The notes: a model not told the origin generated them from the sequence alone. DNA of 63,176 nt, filler included, from Choristocarpus tenellus KU-1152 (GCA_964200185.2; 6 parts of 6 records of this genome joined end to end with filler, not necessarily neighbours in it); one strand, 5' to 3'. Positions 21,568 to 33,525 are shown, counted from the whole stretch's first letter. Translations and numbers: made by a program.

Positions 21568-21651
21568 AAAAAAAGGTTTCTTTTCCTTTTTTTGTTCCAA
21601 GGGGACCCTCTGGTGTAGCCCCCCCCCCCCCCCCCCCAGATACTTTGGGTC
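21568..21651. mobile_element. MITE family B end fragment abutting the copia pol
   Basis: ACCCTCTGGTGTAG-poly(C)-CAGATACTTTGGGTC matches the right end of the 27013-27205 copy. Confidence 0.65.
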
Positions 21652-22922
21652 TACCCCATGATATCTCAAGGACTTTGGACAAGAGTGAGAGAATCATTAA
21701 AGTGTTGATGAAAATACACCGTACAGAGACAGTTTGTAGTTTGATGAGGGCATCTGTTATGGCTAGGCTTGACATTGCAAATACAGTTTGTGAAATTGCC
21801 AAGTATAGTAGCAATCCCAAAGTCACACATTGGCGTGCAGTGAAATGTATTTTAGCATATTTGAATACGTCTCCCAGATTGAGTTTTGGTGGGTTTGATA
21901 CTGAGTGTGAGTTGAGTGCGTATGTTGATGCTAGTTATGCTGGAGACTGGAATGGTCGTAGATCCGTGACTGGAGAAGCAATAATGTTTGCAGGAGCAAT
22001 ATCTTGGATGTCAAAGGTACAAAGAGCTGTAGCTCTGTCTTCAACGGAGAGTGAATACATAGCTCTTAGCAGTGTGGCAAAGGAATTACTTTTCTTGAGA
22101 AGCGTTCTTGAGTTTATTCAGTCACAGTTTCCTAGGCGTTGCATTGACATGTTGGAGGACAACGATGGCGCATGCAAACTAGTACGAAATGCCACAAGCT
22201 TTACTAGAACCAAGCACATTGATGTCCGACATCATTTTCTGAGGGATTTTTCGAGAAAAGGAGAGGTTCGTGTTGTTTTTGTTGGTACTGCATATCAGAG
22301 GGCAGATGTGCTGACTAAGAATTTTCCAATTCGAGTTTTTAGACAGTGTGTGAAGGTTTTGATAAACATGCAAGGTAACATGTGTGTTGTATTTTTTGTT
22401 TGTTATGCAATTGTATGTGAGTTAACATTTGTTTTCAGCAAGGGGAGGATGTCGAATAACCCAGTGTTATCCTTACGTTATCTGTGCTGATACAAAGTAC
22501 GAACGTGCATAAGAAGATAATAAATCAACATTCATTCAAATGTAGGTGATAATGGATGACTGGCGGGCAATGAATGATTCAGTGTATGTTTTACCATGAA
22601 ACTCAACTACTAGCTTTCGGCGACAAGCCTCATATACGCCAAGTTATTCAACAGAGTGGAGACGAAGACGATAACACGACTAGCCATGTTTGTATGTATT
22701 CTGCGGTTCTCTTGTTACGTTTTTAGTAGCACCAGCCTCCTTAGGCCGATGAGTGTGCAGCTATGCTTCTACGTTACGGCTAACGAAGATGCTTGCTCCA
22801 GAAAGTAGGGACGAACTCCAAGCACCTCTCACTCTATTGGTCAGGCTTGTCACTACTGCTGGAAAGAACAGCCACCGTCTCTCACACTAATATCTAAACA
22901 TTATAAACCCCCCGTCACAACA
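21652..22922 (+). mobile_element. Ty1/copia LTR retrotransposon 3' part: RT C-terminus/RNase H, PPT, 3' LTR
   Basis: ORF 21645-22490 has LSAYVDASYA..RRSVTG, ISWMSKVQ..VALSSTESEYIA, EDNDGA, RTKHIDVRHHFLR, QRADVLTK. Polypurine tract AAGGGGAGGA at 22440-22449 is followed by TGTCG; the likely LTR end is CAACA at 22922. Confidence 0.9.
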
Positions 22923-23203
22923 CCTTACACTTTTGAAGACTCTGCCACGGCGAAATCTTAGTGCTTTGTAGTATCCCAAAGAATACACTAGTTGCCAGCT
23001 CTACTGCAGCTAGCAAGACAGATGTGGTATGGACCGTAAAGAAGCACGCGTCTATCACTACTGATGCCACAACCCAAGGTTAAGGCATCACACCAGAGTT
23101 CAACGTGGCAGCACTGATGACATCAAATCAAATGTTAAATAGGTTCTAACAACTTGTTGGTTCTCTCAAGTAAGTGTGCAAAACCTTTCATCTGTTCGGA
23201 CAA

Positions 23204-23809
23204 CTAAGGGTTTGGTGATCTCAGTTGTTGTTCTTTTATAATCGCCCATTCCATGCTGTCCCTCACCTCCTCGCCGTCTCCCCTGACCTTATCCCACGTC
23301 TCGCATAAGAATTTATGCTGGTCAGAACGGTACTCGCTGTACTCCTGGAGTCCATTTTCAACATAAAAGCCCTCCCGATAGTACCTGGCCACGTCCAGAG
23401 GTTCCACGAGCTGACGATACTCGTCACCCCACCTCAGCCACTGACCTCTTTCAAAGAAGTTCTTTGATAGGGCCCCTTGTCGATACATTTGAATGGTGAT
23501 CTTCCAAAACTTCCCGAGCTTGCTCCTCGCCACCTCGATCTCCCTGCGTCTGTTGTGGCGAAAGTCATAGTAGTAGGCCTTCGGGTCTCCGTTATTCTCG
23601 ATCTGATGGGACAACTGGTACTCCTGGATCTCTACCACACACTGGGAACCACCAATGTTCTCGAAAGCCTCCCACCGATGCACCGATCGGTCAATGAGCC
23701 TGGCCTCGGCGTCGTCAACCTTGGCCTTTTGTGCCTGCCACAGTGCCAAAATAGAAACAACAAGGCCAACAGTGCCAAACGCTAATGCGATTGCTATCTC
23801 TATTTCCAT
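23204..23809 (-). CDS. Intronless 201-aa protein: N-terminal transmembrane helix plus EDS1/PAD4/SAG101 EP-domain-like region
   Basis: ATG-initiated uninterrupted ORF with hydrophobic aa 5-24. Collinear motifs: EIQEY, AYYYDFR, RSKLGKFW, WLRWGDEYRQLVEPLDVARYY, DSMEWA. Confidence 0.75.
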   Translation of the reverse strand: MEIEIAIALAFGTVGLVVSILALWQAQKAKVDDAEARLIDRSVHRWEAFENIGGSQCVVEIQEYQLSHQIENNGDPKAYYYDFRHNRRREIEVARSKLGKFWKITIQMYRQGALSKNFFERGQWLRWGDEYRQLVEPLDVARYYREGFYVENGLQEYSEYRSDQHKFLCETWDKVRGDGEEVRDSMEWAIIKEQQLRSPNP

Positions 23810-25861
23810 GTTCCTTGCCTCTTGCTATTTCTGTTTGCGTCGTACGTCAGAATTGGTACTCATTGATGGTGTGATATTGAGCAGCCTTCCCTCCTTCCTG
23901 TGCCTCCTAATCACTTGACAGAATTGCCATCTTCCACCCTTGACACCTCTACACATTCAATACTGATAAGAGATTTTGGAAGTTATAGTGTGTTTCTTTC
24001 TCCCTCCTTCAGAATGTTCTGTTTTTTCCCAACATCGGAGTTGACGTGGAGGATGGTCAGGACCAAACAAGTGGTACTTATTATTATATCTTGTTCTAGG
24101 ACTGGTAGTAATAGATTGAACTGTTAAAGGAATTTTCGCCAATAACGAGTAAGAGGTACTCATATAGCAAGAATGAGACAATTGTTCGGGGATTGTTCCA
24201 CAAAAGTACACTTTTCATGACGATTCCTGTTCGCCGAACTATCATAAGGGGAGGTATTGTCCAACCCTCTCAATCACCCTAGCAAACAATCTTACAAGTT
24301 ACCTAACAATATATTTCCCAGAACATTACTTGAACATCACAATATTCAAATGTTCCTTTCCATCACTCATGAATCATTCTAGTCGCACTATATTGTTACA
24401 AAGACATTAATTTATTACTTCATGTATACTAATAACAACGTTGAGTGCGTACCTTGAAAGTGTTTATTTCTCTGTTGTTTCCAACTTTTCCGACACTATT
24501 AAAAAAAGTTGCGTTACAAATTTGTAAAAAAAGGCAATTTTTACACCTATTTGTTAGCATCCTCAAAATGCAACTCTGGGTGCCTCTCGTTTACCTTGAC
24601 TCGCACGCAAAATTGATACTCCCCCTGTCCATAACAAAGTGACATCACAATTAAACAAAGAAGGCTCATTCTACAATTTTACAATATGGCATCTTTTTCG
24701 ACCTTTCTCGTGATCCTTACAAAGAGATCCTTGCTATCTCTCAATCGGTTTGGCTCATGTCAGTCATGAGATGCACCCTAAACAACAAATATTCAAGCGT
24801 ATAGATCCCAGGAAAGCTTTGTCGACATCAGATTATCAACACAGCAAACCTAGAAAGCACACAACATGGGCCTTCATTGCTGTAGCTACCATGGCAATCA
24901 TAACCAGAGCAAAAGAAGAGGTTAAGTTCATGGACTGCACAACAACAGGGACACCATTACTACTTCGTGAAAATAAATAATAATTCACAACATAACACGG
25001 TCCTTCCTCTACTCAGCATACTGCAAAGTCCAGAGTCACAGTCTTCAAACTTCTGATCAAGCAGAACAGAGTGACACTATCAAAGAGAGGTGTGTCGTTG
25101 AGTTTTAGGGTCCATATGACTGTATTATGGTGTAAGCGTTTTGAACAATTTGTGGAGAAAGCTTTGGGCTAACAATGTGCTAACACCTAGTACTCTGCTT
25201 CAACCACAACCTACCGAGGGGAGTTGAATTTATTCCAGGTTATATGAAGGTATCCCGAGATGGCAGACCCCAGGAGTAAGGACACTGATGTCAAAACTAG
25301 AATTCCTCAATTGCCGGCAGACTGCAATTTGGTCAGGGTTGAAGTTGAAAGCGACCCTAGCAAAGTCTATCCAGGAGGAGAGAAAATTTCAAAACACACA
25401 ACACAAGCATCCAATTTTGATCATTATTTTGATTGGTGGGGGCTAGGTGACGCACACTTTCCAGAAACATTCACTTCTTCATTGAAGTTGAGGTGGTCTC
25501 ACGAGGGTGCAATTACCCTTAATATACTTCGCCATAGCATTCATCATTCATCATCAATCGGGGGACAGATTATGTCCGCATTCATATTATTTTTTAGGTG
25601 AGGCTTAGGTTCAGAAAAAATAAAATGAAGGATGACCTGTCTGATTCATCCCAAAAATTGCGATGAACTGTGCAAAGCTCTTCCCCTATGAAAGAAGATG
25701 TAACGACTCTGGGGCCTTTTCCGTACTATGTGCCGCCATCACCATGAGACCACGGCCTTAGAACCATGACCTTATCTACCACCACCTCGTCATTTGCTGC
25801 TAGGGTGTTACTAATAACAACTCAGTCGCTATCTTGGTAGAGTAGATTGGTTGGTCAGGAC

Positions 25862-28800
25862 TCAGTCCTTTGTGCCTGCACCACCAAACACATCTTCAAT
25901 CGTCTTGGCAAGGCTGATGCCCGTACCCAAGTATCCAGACTTTTTGGTCTTGATAGAGTAGAGGAACAGTGCTACCGCCTGAAGTGAAAAGAAAAAAAAT
26001 ACATACACGCATGACACACACACACATGCAGACACAGACACGCGCGCGCACACACACAGTTGTGAGAGGAGGTTGAAGGGCACGAAATGGGAAAGTAACA
26101 GAGTGGGCGTAACGAAATGGTTTAGCTCATACAGTGACAATAATTTCCCAACCACTCCCTCACCCCCCTACCTAGGTAGAAAGTTGGCGGCAATCTCCGA
26201 TTTCCCACAAAGTCGGCACACCCTACACAAACTGTACATAAAAAATAGTAATAATGATAATAATAGTGAAAGCATCTTAGAGGGTACGAGTTTCGCCTTG
26301 TTTGACATTCGGGGCTTGGTTTCCCATGTTCTTTTATTAATGATATTTTCCTAATCGATAATATATCGGAGTAGGTAAAACGTGTACATTATGAAAGGTG
26401 TGTTCGGAACATGGATATTGACACTTCCTAACAAACACGATAGCCAAAATTACATCAAAATCGCAACATTGGATCTTGGTCCCCAAATGGACGTGGCTCT
26501 ACCCTCTAAAGATACTCTGTTATAAAATAATCAAAATTACATTTAATTTTTTTTTACTGTTTTACCGGTTGGTACTGTGTTTCTGATGAGAGGACAAATT
26601 GGGGGTATACCTTATATGTGCAACTAATTAAACTAATTTTCTCTTGCAATATTACTATAATAAATAAATTTATCATGCCTTCCATTGTATTGCTATCAGT
26701 CTTGGCCATTATTGTGGCGGATTGGATATTTTCATGTCACTTTTAAAACTCAACACCAACAATGATGCTTTGGACCAATTCATTGCATCAGATTGACCTT
26801 TCAAACTGGCCAATCACAGATACGATATATCTAAATAAATATATTTAAATACTACATACTATATACTCAGTATGAGGAACTCTCATCAAATATTTATGGA
26901 AATCACAATTGTTGTCTTGAGTAGAGTCAAAGTAGGGCATAGTAGTACATTTTAGTTTTATTATTGTTAATTAAAATATGTATGTATATATATGTATATC
27001 ACACTACACCTGGGGCTCGAAGTATCGGGGGGGGGGGGTGGGAGCTGCCCATTCAGGGGCCGTGTTTCCATGTCGTGATTTTTGTGTGATTTGGTTGCAT
27101 CTGTTGGATGGATAATGTAAGTGCACTTCTCCTGGTCAGGGCCCAAACAGACACCCTGGTGTAGACCTCCCCCCCTCCCTCCCCCACCTCCAATACTTAG
27201 AGCCCTGATACAAAAATAACATTTTCAACTAAAAAATAAAGCATTTTTTTTTCTTCAACAAACATTCCAATGCTCCTTTACATGTATAGAGTTTGAGATT
27301 CAGGAGGCATAGGCGAGAAAAGAGTCGATCATAACGCCTTCAGTCTAATAAGAAAAACTGGAACAATAATCCTCTCGACAGTAAAATCACACAAGTACAT
27401 ACATATTTTCCTTACTCGAGGAAGAGAAAACAGCAAATAATTCAGTAAAACAGAGTTGGTGACAAAATACCTCTCTCCCCCACCTTTTGTATTGTATACC
27501 TTGTGTACTGTATACTCAGTGCGTAGCTGAGGTTTAACAACCCCCCCGACTTTCTGGTAGCAACATCTCAATATATATATATGTGTCTCTTCACAAAGTC
27601 TGCAGGTGTCAAGTGCATTTCGATTGGTGCTGTCTTGTTCCCATCTTCAGTTTGTTTCTTTTCACTAAACTTTCAAAACTTTCAAAATTACTCTAACCTT
27701 TCAGTCTTTTTACCTTTCAAAATCTCTTCAAAAAAAGAAACCTTAACCTTCACAAATCGATATGCCCAACCCCCCCCCACCCTTTACTTTATTTGTACCT
27801 GGAATACATTTGCCGGGCCCGGCAACGCCTCCCAAAACTCCCCGTTGGCCACTACAGAGAAGTGTGGAGGTTGCTCTCCCATCTTCATGAGCAGGAACCT
27901 GTCCACCAATCGGAATTTTCTGGGAATGTCCATATAAAACTCGTATACCCACAAAGAATGCAACAAGACCTTTGCAATGAGATGTGGGTGTTCACATTAG
28001 CTACCTGAGCAAGGTCCTGCCTTGCACTGTATTGAGATGTCACTAATAATACAAATATTGTAGTCCACTAGTGCCAAGTGCAACAAAACAACCACATCAA
28101 AAGATCGATAATACCTAGGTCAGGTTCTTATGCTATGTATGGCGGCGTGTGTGGAAGTAGGACTACAGCAGCAGTGCACTGACCGAGCAAAAGACCATCC
28201 AAGATCAAAATAAAAACCAAATTATATGAGCATGGAAGGTGTTATGGGCGAGTTCATTGAATTAATGGGTTAGACCTTGACAACATACTACCAACCAGGC
28301 TTGTTTGATATCTCACCTGTTTACATCATTATTGTTATGTGGGAAAATTCTTATCGTTTTCTTACAACAAAATAAAATGGTTGATACTAATAAGAAGAAG
28401 AAAAAAGCAATGAAAACACTAATCTGAAAACCGTATTGGTTGTACATGTTAAAAATAAATAAATAGCACTAATAAGCACGCCACTATCACTACTAATACT
28501 ACCATAGCACTACTCCTGTTGTAGAAGCAATCATTATAAAAACAGCAATCAACCCCCAACCCTAACCCCCCATATCTAGAGTCATTATAATAAGAAAAAT
28601 CATAAGAATAATAGGGGTTAGGGTTAGGGTATTGGGGGGATGGGGCAAGTCACTGACCAAGCTGCAACCTTAATAACCCTTTCCTGAGAGGAACATTGGT
28701 TATTGAAGCAGATTCTACTATGGCACATACATGCGTATATATACATACATTTGAGACACACATTCCACTCCTCTACACTCTACATGGAACACAGTCCAAC

Positions 28801-31800
28801 AAAGACAAGCAAAAAAAACAAACATCTTGTTGTGTCGATATAAAACACCAATCAATCACCCTTTTCCTACCTAACTACAACCAACACAATCTGACACCCT
28901 ATCTGTTCCAAACCCGACAAGAAGGAATGCGACATTCTATCACCAAGAAGGCATTTTCAAACAAGCAAGAAAGACTTCATCTCGACAGAACACAAAGACG
29001 TACGTCATTATTCCCACACATACTGTTACATACTGTTCACACACACAGGCATCAAACATCAAACACATGAAGGCAATCAATCACACAAGGACCAAACGGA
29101 ATGGGTGTATGAAAAAATACCTTCTGTTGCTAGTACTGCAATGAACCTACAAATTAACATAACTATACTTAGGATTAGGGTTAGGGCTAGGGCGGATTGA
29201 AAACAAAATAAAACAAAAAGGTTGCCACTACAAAGTAACCCCTTTGAGACTTGAGTAGGTGAGAGGGGTGTCCAGGTCTGTCATGCAGAGGAGAGGCCGT
29301 TTGGCACCTAAAGCCAGTTTTTCAATCTTTTGCAATTCAACCACATTGTCGTTTCAAAATGTTAATTTTCTCATTTTTGTTTGGGGCAGGGGGGGGACGT
29401 ACGCCGTAAGCCATAGAGCTAGACAAAATAAGTTATAGGACAAAACAGTGGCACACGTTACACCTCCAGAGGACAAATAAAATAAAATATATACATTAAA
29501 CTTAAAGAAAAAAAGAAATACGCTCAAATATCACCTCGCCATTTTTAATAAAAAGAATAAATATACTCCCCCCCCCCACATCAAACTAAACCTTGACCCT
29601 ACCTACATATTGACACTACTAAAGCTCTCGAACAGTGCATAACAAGATGTTCCCAAAAGATTGAAGGCGGCGGTACCTTCAATATCAATACCATGAGCAC
29701 AGTCCATACACTCTCACTAACAACCCAACTCTCTAACCCTCACCTCCCCCTGAGGTTTTCCTCGCCCCTGACAGGTGGTGTCTCCATGAAGTGTGCCCTT
29801 GAGAACGGTCTATCCTCTGGGTATTCCTTGGAGAGGAGGTCATCGCTGCTGCAGACATAGACGTGCATTACCACGGCAGCATCTGTCGCCAGCTGGGGAC
29901 CCCAGTCCCTCCCACCATACCTGAAATAATATATTAGGTTTAGGGTTAACAGGATCCGTTGGAGGTTTAAGGTTAGGGTTACCTGAAACAACAACAAAAT
30001 ATTATTAATTGAAAAAAGGCATCCAATGAGAGGTCTTGGATGAACAAACCATTCATCCATTGTACATAGTATATTTATTTGTCTCAAGTAACCCTAACCC
30101 CAATCTAAAATATAAAAAACCAAGAAGCCCTTGCCTCAACTCTGCCTTTCATCTCCAACCCTAACCCTAACCCTAACTTGAATCTATATCCCTAACTTTA
30201 TCGCCTGTAGGTACACACTACTAATGCATAATACACATCAAAGCGCAATCCTAATCCTAGCCCTAGCCCTAACCCTAACTTACACTCTGAGCTCGCAAAA
30301 ATAAACAATAAACATTTTTCTTCCTTAGTAATACACACACACAACGTTTTTCAATTATATAGTAATATATACACACAACGTTTTCAATTATATAAAGTCT
30401 CAACATAAAAAAAACTCCGCCCCCCCCAACCTCCAAAAAAAGACTGCTTAATTTGAATAATAACTCGTTAGTTACTCGTTAGATACTCGTTAGTTACTCG
30501 TTAGTTACTCGTTAGTTACTCGTTAGATACTCGTTAGTTACTCGTTAGATACTCGTTAGATACTCGTTAGATACTCGTTAGTTACTCGTTAGATACTCGT
30601 TAGTTACTCGTTAGATACTCGTTAGATACTCGTTAGTTACTCGTTAGTTACTCGTTAGTTACTCGTTAGATACTCGTTAGTTACTCGTTAGTTACTCTCT
30701 GCTTTACTCGAAGAGCAACTAACACAGCTTTTGAAGGACTTGGACAGAGATAGGCCATTTGTGAAAATTTCTAATAACAGTGCCATACATACTGCTTTAA
30801 TTCATTTATATTGCTTTGTGTCTCCAGTTCACAGGCAGTAAGTCCATCCCAATAAATTCACCTAAACCTTTACGCATTTTTTTAACCCTGTGAAACAACC
30901 CGGAGGGACAAAGGTACTCTATGAGTTAGGGTTAGGGTGTGAGTAATAATAATAATAATAATAATAAAACAGATGAAAATACTCTAAATAAATAATTATA
31001 TATTTTTTCTTATGCATTGTGCAACATAATTCTACCCTAAACCTAACCCTAACCAACAAGGTAGCCGATTTCAGTTTCAAACAATATTGAACTCGTTCTA
31101 CGTCAACAAAATGCCTTTGTGATATTACAATCATACATCATACCTCATACATCATACTGAGGATAACATAAGGCACTAGTCATTATAGTAATCTACCTCC
31201 CTCATCAGTGCACTACTAGACTCTCAGTCTTACCTGCTCCAGGGTAACAGTGTAATTCTACTTATTAATATTATTATATTAATATTATTTTCACCATTAT
31301 TATTATTCTTAAGGTGACACACCTGAAACATACAGATCCCCATAAATGTACAGAAAATAATTTCTCTGTATATTACATGTCCATTACAAAGAGGTGACCT
31401 TCACTACTTCATGTGCCAAGTGACACAATGCCTTCACTTGATATCATTTTATTTTATTCAGTCTCTATTCTACAGGACATCTTCAATGATTTTTTGTTTT
31501 TCTGGGGGGGGGGGGGGAGAAGATTCTATTCCACCCGTAAAAAAATAAGGTCTACTGCACAGGAATTAAACAAAATATGTCAAAGTGACTGAAAGAGGTA
31601 TCTATACCTCTCAGATGGTATCAATAATCTAATAGTGTGACTCTAGAGAAAGAGAGATGGATAGATAGAGAGAGAAAAAAAACTGATCAACAAACCTTCC
31701 ACCCTTGTCCCAAATAAAAGTACTCAGAAAGTCATCTTCAGCCAACGTGCGTAGCCTCTGAAGGACATAGCCGGCTCCAGAGCCAACTCCGGTAGCACCA

Positions 31801-31877
31801 ACGCCAACGCCAACATGCAAAGCCTTTTCTAGGTACTGGCATGTTTCCATAGCAACATTGCAGTCAGTGGGCGGTAT
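25862..31877 (-). CDS. TMEM209: TMEM209 (CytochromB561_N family nuclear-envelope protein), 3' four exons (31877-31696, 29920-29744, 27898-27799, 25978-25862)
   Basis: Phase-consistent splicing gives YVLQRLRTLAEDDFLSTFIWDKGGRYGGRDWGPQLATDAAVVMHVY...PPHF...NVFQAVALFLYSIKTKKSGYLG, matching the conserved TMEM209 C-terminus. Confidence 0.85.
26264..26517 (-). mobile_element. MITE family A, full copy in reverse orientation
   Basis: Reverse complement is collinear with 6485-6743; ends AGTGAAAGCATCTTAGAGGGTA / TACCCTCTAAAGATACT. Confidence 0.8.
27013..27205 (+). mobile_element. MITE family B, full copy
   Basis: Imperfect TIRs GGGCTCGAAGTATCGG+poly(G) / poly(C)+CCAATACTTAGAGCCC; the internal part is the reverse complement of 33340-33500. 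Confidence 0.75.
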
Positions 31878-33001
31878 CTTGTTGGTAAAGTTCTTAGGGT
31901 TAGGGTTAGGGTCAGGGTTAGGGTTAGGGCTGAAATTACTTTCTCGAAAAGGTCAAGAAAAGGTACTAATGTACATGCATGCTTGAAGAACTATGTGATC
32001 AACTGACTACTCCCCACTTTGTTGGGGGTGAGAGGAGTTTGGGATAATGAGCCATAGTTTCAAGCACTACAGAGCACTCTTGTGGTTCAGCGGCTAGATG
32101 GAGGATAGAGGGGGAGGAGGGATGGCATTCTGTAATTACATTTTTTGATTATTTTCATTGCTACTTCAACATCTTCAAATGTATCTTAAAAAATGGATAG
32201 GGTTAGGGTTAGTTACGCCGTCTCATACACAAAATATATGTAACAAATTTGAAGATGTTGATAATTATTATCATTCTAAGCAAAAAAAATGTAACAAGTT
32301 TTTGAATCCCTAAGCCCATAATATCCTGACAAAAAACTTGAAACACCTAAATCGCCACCAATCAGGAAGAGCTTATGTGGACATTTCCCAGAGCTACAAG
32401 AAATGTGAGCTGTATCTATTTTTAACCAATTACAACACATAAAAAGTCCAACCTGAGAGAACCACTATTCAAAAAATTATTTCAGTGTTCTCTAATAAAA
32501 AGAAAAATACTGCAGTTGTCAGCATATTAACACCGCCTGGACCACTAACCCTAACCCTAACCCTAAGCACCCTCACAATCAATAAAAATTCTTTCACCTG
32601 TCCATGGGTTGTAAGTGTGTCCAGGTTTTATTAGAGGATCAACCAAAATTAATGAATAAATTGTTAATTTCAGACATCAAGTAAGAGTCAACCAGGGGAG
32701 GGGGGGGGCAAATCAATCAATAAAAAAAAACCCATGAATATATATATATAACAATGTTTACACCATCAACATCTTGTTGTGACTCTGAGCAGCAGGAAGT
32801 GAAGTGTGCGAAGAAGTGGGCAGGCGTTTCTTTCTATAGCATACACAAAGGCAACAATAACCCTAACCCTAACCCTAAACATGATTCGGGTGGAAACTGT
32901 GCAATAATAATAATAATAGTAATAGATTGAGGTCAACGAATTGTCAGAGAAATCATCTCCAGAGATATATGTCCAGGAAAGGGCTTAGGGTTAGGGTTAG
33001 G
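28555..33001. repeat. Cluster of short interstitial telomere-like (TTAGGG/CCCTAA)n tracts
   Basis: About 14 short tracts in both orientations, e.g. ~28615, 29170, 29935-29980, 30160, 30260, 30925, 31035, 31895-31930, 32200, 32550, 32860, 32985. Confidence 0.85.
30463..30697. repeat. 11-bp minisatellite ACTCGTTAG[T/A]T x21
   Basis: Counted directly; units differ only at one position. Confidence 0.95.
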
Positions 33002-33324
33002 AAGTTTTTTTTTTAATGATTTGGAGGGCAAGGGCATATGACTAAGGGTATGTGAAGCAGTCAGTGACTTATGATGGTCTACTCTTGGGAGGTTAACATA
33101 TGTTGAGATATCTTATGACATGTTAAGGTATGTCATGACATTAACTCCCCTCTGCTGCTTCAAGGTAAAAAAATAAAATTAGTAAGTACTATAATAATAA
33201 TAATATTACTAGCTGTTATTAGTGGTGGTAAAAGTAATAACAATAGCAATGGCATTAATCGCGATAGTGATGGACTGGCTGATGCAGAACGGGCAGTTGG
33301 ATCTCAACATTTTTTAATTTACAA

Positions 33325-33510
33325 GTCTCAAAGCGTCTGGGGGGTGGGGGTGGGGGGGATCTACGCCAGGGTGCCCATTCTGGCGCTGACCAGAAAAAAG
33401 TGTGCTTACATTATCCATCTGACGCATGCAACCAAATCACACAATAATAGCAACATGGAAAAATAGGCCCCGAATGGACAGTCGTCACCCCCCCCCCCCC
33501 CCCAAACATT
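33325..33510 (-). mobile_element. MITE family B, diverged copy in reverse orientation
   Basis: e.g. GCTTACATTATCCATCTGACGCATGCAACCAAATCACACAA versus TTGTGTGATTTGGTTGCATCTGTTGGATGGATAATGTAAGT at ~27082-27122; G-run and C-run ends. Confidence 0.75.
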
Positions 33511-33525
33511 AATCCACCACCTCTT

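Follow-up and report, generated by a model that had tools for sequence, protein, structure and literature searches.

A membrane-anchored homologue of the plant EDS1-family EP domain in the brown alga Choristocarpus tenellus and its algal relatives

Papers on plant immunity take the EP domain to be the hallmark of the EDS1 family and an innovation of seed plants alone (PMC9806590, PMC10834447), and a 2026 preprint reports robust EP homology in seed plants only, along with 'short EP-like sequences' in green algae. The sole characterised function of EP domains is the binding of a ligand between two of them (bioRxiv 10.1101/2022.05.02.490369; bioRxiv 10.1101/2024.10.29.620780). The contacts with pRib-AMP/ADP involve D469, N472, Y473, K478, T482, T492, R493 and K440 on the EDS1 side and R314, F375 and K379 on the PAD4 side (bioRxiv 10.1101/2024.10.29.620780), with further support for the plant pocket in PMC6377607 and bioRxiv 10.1101/2022.05.02.490369; EDS1 R493 and PAD4 R314 are each individually required for ligand-dependent signalling in plants (PMC6377607; bioRxiv 10.1101/2024.10.29.620780).

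The existence of EP genes in brown algae is already published (PMC12089773, Genome Biol Evol 2025). In that work, 'EDS1' genes, chosen solely by the InterPro signatures IPR044214 and IPR041266, were counted in Sargassum (13-19 copies, mostly overlapping transposable elements [TEs]), Saccharina (3) and Undaria (1), with none in the Ectocarpales; basal brown algae were not sampled. The Sargassum genes with the EP signature are transcribed under desiccation, GFP fusions of the Sargassum proteins localise to endomembranes or vesicles in Arabidopsis protoplasts, and the genes are treated as EDS1 orthologues that act in salicylic-acid synthesis (PMC12089773). The terms 'lipase' and 'EP domain' are absent from the text of PMC12089773, 'transmembrane' appears there in unrelated GO terms only, and ligand residues are not mentioned. 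In the literature searched, we found no description of an architecture that combines a transmembrane (TM) helix with an EP domain (hereinafter TM-EP), of relatives in Chlorokybus, of the truncation of the domain or of the missing ligand residues.

The gene analysed here lies in a window, that is, the whole stretch of DNA under study, of 63,176 nucleotides (filler included) that joins parts of six records of the genome of Choristocarpus tenellus KU-1152 (GCA_964200185.2), an alga that NCBI files under Sphacelariales. The piece at 21568-33525 is AT-rich, repeat-laden eukaryotic DNA with 40.5% GC, compared with 51% GC and 63% GC3 in the TM-EP ORF, which resembles its homologues in GC and differs from the surrounding DNA. 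The ATG stands in a Kozak-like context (A at -3, G at +4), and the encoded protein retains all family-invariant residues at about 50% identity to its relatives. The ORF has been shown to be a genuine single-exon gene for a bitopic protein of 201 residues (Table 1). A preliminary description, made from the sequence, had pointed to a membrane anchor in place of the lipase-like domain, and this observation was correct because the ORF, the helix, the in-frame stop and the GC and GC3 values all agree. The hydrophobic N-terminus followed by Gln-Ala-Gln-Lys-Ala-Lys is confirmed (23723-23809 encodes residues 1-29); there is indeed no alpha/beta-hydrolase in frame upstream, given the stop six codons 5' of the ORF and the tblastn search without a lipase match; and the end of the protein, placed about 12 residues after DSxxWA, lies 13 residues past Asp-Ser-x-x-Trp-Ala by our count.

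Table 1. Features of the Choristocarpus TM-EP locus (positions counted from the first letter of the window; residues are those of the encoded protein)
Feature	Residues	Position	Strand	Remarks
Complete intron-less CDS, 201 codons plus stop		23204..23809	minus	ATG at 23807-23809; TAG at 23204-23206
In-frame stop TAG, 6 codons 5' of the ATG		23825..23827	minus	
Predicted transmembrane helix	5-24	23738..23797	minus	KD19, column conservation, AlphaFold helix 2-51
Juxtamembrane 'stalk' helix, continuous with the TM helix	25-51	23657..23737	minus	
EP-type helical domain	37-201	23207..23701	minus	superposes on AtPAD4 295-464, OsPAD4 415-592, AtEDS1 365-561
Pfam EDS1_EP core	76-164	23318..23584	minus	profile 14-108 of 211; includes Leu-Val-Glu-Pro-Leu-Asp
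Probable transcribed unit		22601..23934	minus	1334-nt collinear contig of run X3, word depth 619
Ty1/copia pol (RNase H end) fragment, cut by piece edge		21568..22490	plus	TE neighbour of the gene's 3' end

The protein carries a homologue of the first part of the EP domain of EDS1, PAD4 and SAG101, as shown by comparisons of both sequence and fold. Its lone Pfam match is PF18117, EDS1_EP (E 1.4e-15; 57.9 bits against a cutoff of 23.1), and the significant sequence matches in the PDB are EDS1, PAD4 and SAG101 and no others. In an hhalign comparison, a profile of 20 TM-EP sequences matched a profile of 25 plant EP domains at 99.8% (E 6e-30, 135 columns). AlphaFold2 predicts a continuous helix at residues 2-51 followed by seven more helices, with a mean pLDDT of 92.4 when plant sequences were present in the alignment and 93.5 when they were not. 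The first 23 Foldseek hits of the model are all EP-domain chains, and in an exhaustive VIA fold search of 48,161 PDB representatives, for which the plant-free AlphaFold model was the query, the top match was OsPAD4 (Z 16.6; rmsd 2.1 A over 152 residues, model 37-201 on 415-592), along with AtPAD4 (Z 16.1) and AtEDS1 (Z 14.9, model 35-201 on 365-561); EP domains are alone above Z 8, the next chain, an unrelated one, scoring 7.4. Altogether, the fold matches to plant EP domains have rmsd values of 2.1-3.2 A over 152-160 residues. The homology spans only the first ~170 residues of the plant domain: its last 60-100 residues are absent, such that AtEDS1 562-623 and OsPAD4 593-659 have no counterpart and the plant profile runs about 100 columns past the end of TM-EP in the hhalign alignment. 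The truncated form offers a minimal, single-chain EP domain of 170 residues for biochemical work.

The helical domain is homologous to that of the plant proteins, and the core motifs Tyr-Tyr-x-x-Phe, Phe-Trp, Leu-Val-Glu-Pro-Leu-Asp, the Arg of Arg-Pro, and Asp-Ser-x-x-Trp-Ala are shared. However, the algal protein, from a brown alga rather than a seed plant, is shorter (201 residues compared with 530-660). Its EP domain lacks a counterpart of the final 60-100 residues, it has other residues at the key ligand positions of EDS1 R493 and K478 and of PAD4 R314, and its N-terminal TM helix occupies the place of the lipase-like alpha/beta-hydrolase. Because there is no lipase-like domain, a dimer interface of the LLIF type is lacking as well.

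The N-terminal region consists of Met-Glu-Ile-Glu (residues 1-4), an uncharged hydrophobic segment (residues 5-24; the Kyte-Doolittle mean over 19 residues peaks at 2.58 at residue 5, with 1.6 being the usual threshold) and the stalk helix, which carries K28, K30 and R37 together with conserved Ile-Asp-Arg and Arg-x-Glu-x-Phe-Glu motifs. Among the ten full-length brown-like members, which are about 50% identical overall, A8, L9, G12, G15, S19 and L23 do not vary and Ala or Ser occupies position 22 in every case, so that the small residues (A8, G12, G15, S19 and position 22) form a stripe with 4-3-4-3 spacing on one face of the helix. The TM helices of the Chlorokybus proteins are Gly-zipper-like, and a 14-residue juxtamembrane duplication is found in three family members. 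The conservation of the stripe exceeds the need of a passive anchor and hence suggests helix-helix packing; the oligomerisation-prone anchor of the preliminary description is accordingly plausible as far as sequence can tell. There is no Lys or Arg before the helix, and K28, K30 and R37 all follow it, so by the positive-inside rule the EP domain would be cytosolic; the same proposal in the preliminary description is very probably right, judging from this charge distribution. A plastid-targeting interpretation of Ala-Leu-Ala-Phe-Gly was considered and rejected, given that the stretch lies 7 residues from the N-terminus and that green-lineage members share the helix.

The Choristocarpus protein belongs to a small algal family, which means that the EP module is not confined to seed plants and occurs unaccompanied by the lipase-like domain found there. 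About a dozen homologues of 198-250 residues with 50-55% identity came from word-indexed searches and exhaustive HMMER searches, and all of them have at their N-terminus a Met, two acidic residues and this helix; one of these is an annotated Ascophyllum nodosum protein of 199 residues. More distant are two annotated proteins of Chlorokybus atmophyticus (P0026 and P0033) and several from eukaryote-like contigs (P0022, P0028/P0104, P0029 and P0060); these are only 23-30% identical to the Choristocarpus protein and possess one N-terminal or near-N-terminal TM helix rich in Gly, Ala and Ser, followed by a short EP domain, at 200-310 residues. All 15 TM-EP members tested match PF18117, and the layout of a single N-terminal TM helix, a stalk and a short EP domain with no other domain (180-310 residues) recurs among them; the TM plus EP architecture without a lipase-like domain that had been described for this one ORF is real and common to the whole family. 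What emerges is a high-confidence EP fold in a brown-alga-type genome and a coherent family with a conserved TM helix that includes Chlorokybus. The 'EDS1' genes of Sargassum, Saccharina and Undaria, with which the Choristocarpus gene shares the brown-algal EP-domain signatures and transcription and which are TE-associated (PMC12089773), almost certainly belong to the same family, being likened by InterPro signatures. The present findings correct the reading of these genes as orthologues involved in salicylic-acid signalling, for they lack the lipase-like domain and key ligand residues.

In an unrooted maximum-likelihood tree (199 columns, LG+C20), a branch with support of 99/98 separates 21 short TM-EP rows, including those from Chlorokybus and the contigs on the same side as the Choristocarpus protein, from 25 seed-plant lipase-EP rows and one fragment. 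The 12 brown-like rows form one group (99/96), in which the Choristocarpus protein is the sister to the other 11 and the most divergent member known. In molecular phylogenies, Choristocarpus and Discosporangium make up the Discosporangiales, the earliest-diverging brown algae. This placement, combined with the sister position of the protein, suggests that the family dates back to the base of brown algae. Whether TM-EP is the ancestral form of the EP domain, as the preliminary description suggested, cannot be read from the tree because the tree is unrooted, but this is possible. An origin from prokaryotes was rejected, as a pattern scan of 185,579 prokaryotic genomes (the GTDB species genomes) revealed no relative and PADLOC gave no hit; so was a viral vector, with no relative detected in IMG/VR by pattern scan and only noise from PHROGs. 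We also judged spurious a protein of 707 residues (P0024) with nine tandem repeats that match residues 2-29, i.e. the hydrophobic stretch alone. A scan of JGI metagenomes returned 52 loci with 28-56% identity over short best segments; closer inspection of one of these (L015) showed a normal EDS1 gene of a plant, and the others look like plant-type EDS1 genes from plant-associated samples.

So what could such a protein do in an alga? The explanation we prefer, and consider reasonably likely, is that it works in stress or defence signalling as an EP adaptor or receptor module that is tethered to a membrane and oligomerises; the stress or defence role itself is of low certainty, and immunity would be an extrapolation from plants. 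In favour of such a role are a divergence hotspot on the coding sequence of recent Ascophyllum-like copies (described below) and the EP-signature genes of Sargassum, which are multi-copy, TE-associated and transcribed under desiccation and whose GFP fusions reach endomembrane vesicles (PMC12089773). In the protein, the 4-residue acidic N-terminus precedes one TM helix that continues as a long stalk and leads into the compact helical EP domain. Under this scenario, the TM helix would act as a signal anchor with the N-terminus out and the C-terminus in, so that the EP domain would face the cytosol on an endomembrane. The invariant stripe of small residues would drive homo-oligomerisation, or hetero-oligomerisation with paralogues, and the helix would thereby take over the dimerisation that lipase-like domains provide in plants and place EP domains next to one another in the plane of the membrane. 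Through a conserved face (R95, F101-W102, W124, R132, E136-P137, D139, R142-Y143 and R161), the protein might then bind a small ligand or another protein, rather than by the chemistry of the plant pRib-AMP/ADP pocket.

A housekeeping role as a membrane scaffold is equally compatible with the sequence, and the strongest competitor of this explanation, although an unlikely one in our estimate, is that TM-EP proteins are membrane-tethered helical scaffolds without any immune function, involved, for example, in organelle or vesicle tethering or in protein sorting, and that the EP domain was recruited to immunity later and in seed plants only. This would fit with the conservation of the family among brown algae, between a basal lineage and Fucales-type sequences, as well as among streptophyte algae, with the strong transcription that is apparent without any known challenge, with the lack of conservation of the plant ligand residues, and with the location of the Sargassum homologues at prevacuolar or multivesicular compartments (PMC12089773). 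It is harder to reconcile with the absence of the family from the Ectocarpales and a copy number that varies from 0 to 19 (PMC12089773), and the TE association and a hotspot of divergence with dN/dS of about 1.2 would be unusual for a housekeeping scaffold. The hotspot was detected in two Ascophyllum-like loci (L001 and L005) that share more than 10 kb, with flanks 95-99% identical and coding sequences only 87-89% identical: 43 of the 199 residues differ, mostly in the loop 63-85 and the C-terminal third, and dN/dS is 1.17 at dS 0.11, compared with 0.10-0.48 for deeper pairs. These recent copies reflect either diversifying selection or relaxation, set against long-term constraint. The Choristocarpus copy itself reads Tyr-Arg-Ser-Asp where the family near-universally has Asn-Arg-Pro-Lys, a loss that may represent relaxed constraint.

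The mechanism put forward in the preliminary description, a one-component membrane receptor for ADP-ribose-type nucleotides made by TIR proteins, which was considered here for pRib-AMP/ADP, ADPr-ATP and cADPR isomers and with oligomerisation on ligand binding like that of the TM-containing Thoeris effectors, is possible but disfavoured for the brown-like clade, and we regard it as improbable. Its appeal is that the only characterised function of EP domains is the binding of such ligands between two of them, and the TM stripe suggests oligomers. Equivalent columns were tabulated from an HMM alignment to AtEDS1 and AtPAD4. Several pocket positions are conserved, namely D139 and Y143 of the Choristocarpus protein (EDS1 D469 and Y473, both pRib contacts) and F118 (PAD4 F375); R95 and R161 (EDS1 R425 and R490) are universal, and the Arg of the R493 column, present in 22 of 25 plant rows, is also found in 7 of the 9 other TM-EP rows, both from Chlorokybus included. 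However, in the brown-like clade, R493 is replaced by Gln in all 11 rows aligned there (Q164 in the Choristocarpus protein) and K478 by Phe in the 11 sequences aligned (F148), and the position of PAD4 R314 is occupied by Met in 11 of the 12 members and by Val (V58) in the Choristocarpus protein; moreover, R493 and R314 are the very residues that plant signalling individually requires. PAD4 K379 corresponds to Gly (G122), EDS1 N472 to Arg (R142), and EDS1 T492 to Asp in the Choristocarpus protein (D163) and to Lys in most relatives; most of the Chlorokybus and contig proteins, in contrast, keep Asn at N472 as well as the Arg at R493. The protein also stops 60-100 residues short of the C-terminus of the plant EP domain, and it resembles neither SLOG nor Macro domains nor any of the PADLOC models. 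Because the equivalents of R493, K478 and R314 are not conserved, the plant nucleotide pocket is not preserved in the brown-like clade, which might have a different ligand or a protein partner. The basic pocket that had been suggested fares accordingly: of the residues named, R95 and R161 are conserved, whereas the HNRRR stretch falls in the most variable loop of the family, and the residues that bind pRib-AMP/ADP are mostly not conserved; the plant pocket, moreover, is one formed between two EP domains. In terms of sequence, then, the idea of a TIR-signal receptor gains no support, the equivalents of R493, K478 and R314 and the C-terminal part of the EP domain being missing. The analogy with Thoeris did not hold up either, with no similarity of sequence or fold: what is shared with TM effectors that respond to TIR signals, such as the TM-Macro ThsA, is the concept alone, membrane helices plus a cytosolic nucleotide-sensing domain, whereas the Choristocarpus protein has a single TM helix, has no SLOG or Macro domain and is matched by no PADLOC model. 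No TIR gene is present in the 12-kb piece 21568-33525.

A broader conjecture, which we find about as doubtful, is that TM-EP is the ancestral membrane-tethered EP module, predating the seed-plant fusion of lipase-like and EP domains, and that these proteins are ligand-gated oligomeric receptors for nucleotide-derived messengers. In such a history, the module would have existed in algae from two eukaryotic supergroups, the streptophyte or green algae on one side and the brown algae on the other, and an ancient gene transfer may account for this distribution. If it is true, EP-based immune signalling is neither an invention of seed plants nor dependent on lipase-like domains. TM-EP in any case provides a specific candidate for what the EDS1 family looked like before the fusion, and with such a candidate the question of how the plant TIR-EDS1 pathway arose can be put to the test.

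Another group of similar size and layout is DUF4760 (PF15956), bacterial and viral proteins of about 150 residues with an N-terminal TM helix, which is the nearest set in a language-model feature search (Atlas; 0.94, 183 of 256 features). One Chlorokybus member matches the DUF4760 profile (3-101 of 141) with E 0.043 and 14.4 bits, below the gathering score of 25 bits, whereas the Choristocarpus protein itself is not matched by this HMM, and no structural match (TM below 0.4) came from the fold search in Atlas. The resemblance may reflect merely the combination of a TM helix with a helical bundle.

Could the gene, instead, be a decaying or TE-captured passenger ORF that has no function for its host? 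We consider this very improbable, notwithstanding the setting of the gene, a 1.5-kb unique island between a copia element, whose pol fragment ends about 700 bp from the 3' end of the gene, and a very high-copy repeat that starts about 460 bp upstream of the ATG. The copia fragment has its ten best protein matches in Choristocarpus tenellus (62-79% identity) and the next in Discosporangium mesarthrocarpum. Most of the Sargassum copies overlap TEs (PMC12089773), and the deviation of the Choristocarpus copy at the Asn-Arg-Pro-Lys segment would also be in line with decay. However, the ORF is intact with a host-like GC3 bias, every family-invariant residue is kept, and deep pairs show dN/dS of 0.1-0.5. 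A location inside a mobile unit was considered and rejected: there is no flank homology between this locus and the other family loci, the EP core alone (about 70% nucleotide identity) is held in common, and no direct, inverted or terminal repeats bracket the gene, so that it is not visibly part of such a unit.

The gene is, furthermore, single-copy at genomic depth and apparently highly expressed. Public runs were compared over 22600-24600, where the depth is flat in runs X1 (23.7) and X2 (6.75), the behaviour of genomic DNA. Run X3, which has no RNA label, under-represents high-copy repeats about 6-fold relative to X1 and over-represents the gene 26-fold, and because of this depletion and enrichment it acts like an RNA library. 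Its contig, which like the others gives neither strand nor exact ends, includes the CDS, preceded by a 5' UTR of at least 125 nt and followed on the 3' side by about 600 nt that extend into the adjacent repeat; X3 coverage is zero at 23940-24207. The contig has the appearance expected of a plentiful mRNA that is not spliced and begins near 23934, and the gene is, by all appearances, strongly transcribed. Splicing to upstream lipase-like exons, which the preliminary description had itself raised as an objection, has no counterpart here: the probable transcript is collinear with the genome over 22601-23934, with nothing upstream.

Finally, the proposition that the ORF is the 3' exon of a canonical lipase-EP, EDS1-like gene with lipase exons upstream draws on the domain homology itself and nothing beyond, and is effectively refuted by the in-frame stop six codons upstream, by the lack of any lipase-like match in the 9.7 kb upstream on the same strand, by the probable transcript contig that stops at 23934 without a junction, by the start at the same Met and helix in all homologues, the annotated Ascophyllum and Chlorokybus proteins included, and by the non-coding upstream regions of four other loci. 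Stops interrupt every frame across the 500 nt 5' of the ORF and all frames upstream of the four homologous loci. When 30 full-length plant EDS1-family proteins were compared with the piece 21568-33525 by tblastn, no lipase-like exon was found and their sole target was the EP part of the ORF (E 1e-7 to 1e-12); the remaining matches all had E > 0.1, and their translations contain no lipase hallmark and no GxSxG. Putative upstream lipase exons among these were dismissed as chance matches, which fall on both strands, with one query segment at three different places. A conserved upstream ORF was likewise rejected: two loci (L001 and L004) share about 400 nt at 73% identity with stops in all frames, and this conservation is therefore ascribed to a UTR or a promoter. 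A scan for bacterial promoters and terminators at the locus gave results at chance level and is irrelevant for a eukaryote. In the positive control, the plant EDS1 locus L015, a lipase exon with GHSSGG was recovered 200 bp upstream of the EP exon.

The possible wider affinities of the TM-EP protein lead to DUF4760 (PF15956), a family of bacterial and viral proteins of about 150 residues with an N-terminal TM helix. In a language-model feature search, the window protein (23207-23809, minus strand) adjoins bacterial and viral DUF4760 clusters with a score of 0.94 and 183 of 256 features, and residues 46-138 of one Chlorokybus atmophyticus TM-EP protein (P0026) give a match to PF15956 at E 0.043, which is below threshold. 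A fold search of the Atlas brought no confirmation of the DUF4760 resemblance. DUF4760 may be a remote prokaryotic relative, or the two may have only the 'TM plus helices' layout in common.

Among the homologues, three brown-like proteins (P0004, P0005 and P0008) carry a tandem duplication of a 14-residue juxtamembrane segment immediately after the TM helix (columns 44-57 of the homologue alignment A1). Two Ascophyllum-like TM-EP loci, L001 (9220-12724) and L005 (9215-12721), have flanks that are 95-99% identical, whereas their coding sequences show only 87-89% identity and form a divergence hotspot between near-identical flanks; 43 of the 199 residues of the encoded proteins are changed, with a dN/dS of 1.17. 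A LINE ORF comprising endonuclease and RT ends about 3.5 kb upstream in L005.

The TM-EP gene of the window lies between a copia fragment on its 3' side and a high-copy repeat whose near edge is about 460 bp away from the start codon on the upstream side (see the table). The ten best protein matches of the copia fragment all come from Choristocarpus tenellus (62-79% identity), with Discosporangium mesarthrocarpum next, a ranking that suggests an early-diverging brown alga as the origin of the DNA. In the sequencing run X1, word depth in the repeat reaches 22,000, compared to 23.7 for the TM-EP gene, and diverged copies are numerous. Two 151-nt contigs from run X4, which is labelled as a different organism (organism B) within the same study, are identical to window 22780-22930 and 23095-23245 at a depth of 3. 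They stem either from carry-over in trace amounts or from an organism very closely related to that of the window.

Repetitive features of the piece that carries the TM-EP gene
Feature	Window position	Strand	Remarks
Ty1/copia pol fragment (RNase H end)	21568-22490	+	truncated by edge of piece
Dispersed repeat, very high-copy	24271-24600 and beyond		from word depth in run X1
Inverted repeats	27027-27128 and 33398-33499		102 nt each, 80% complementary, 6.3 kb between
34-bp repeat	30326-30394		immediately upstream of minisatellite
Minisatellite	30463-30697		11-bp unit, 21 copies, 94% matches
Interstitial telomere-like repeat	31894-31929		(TTAGGG) x 6

The inverted-repeat pair probably consists of two copies of one dispersed element.
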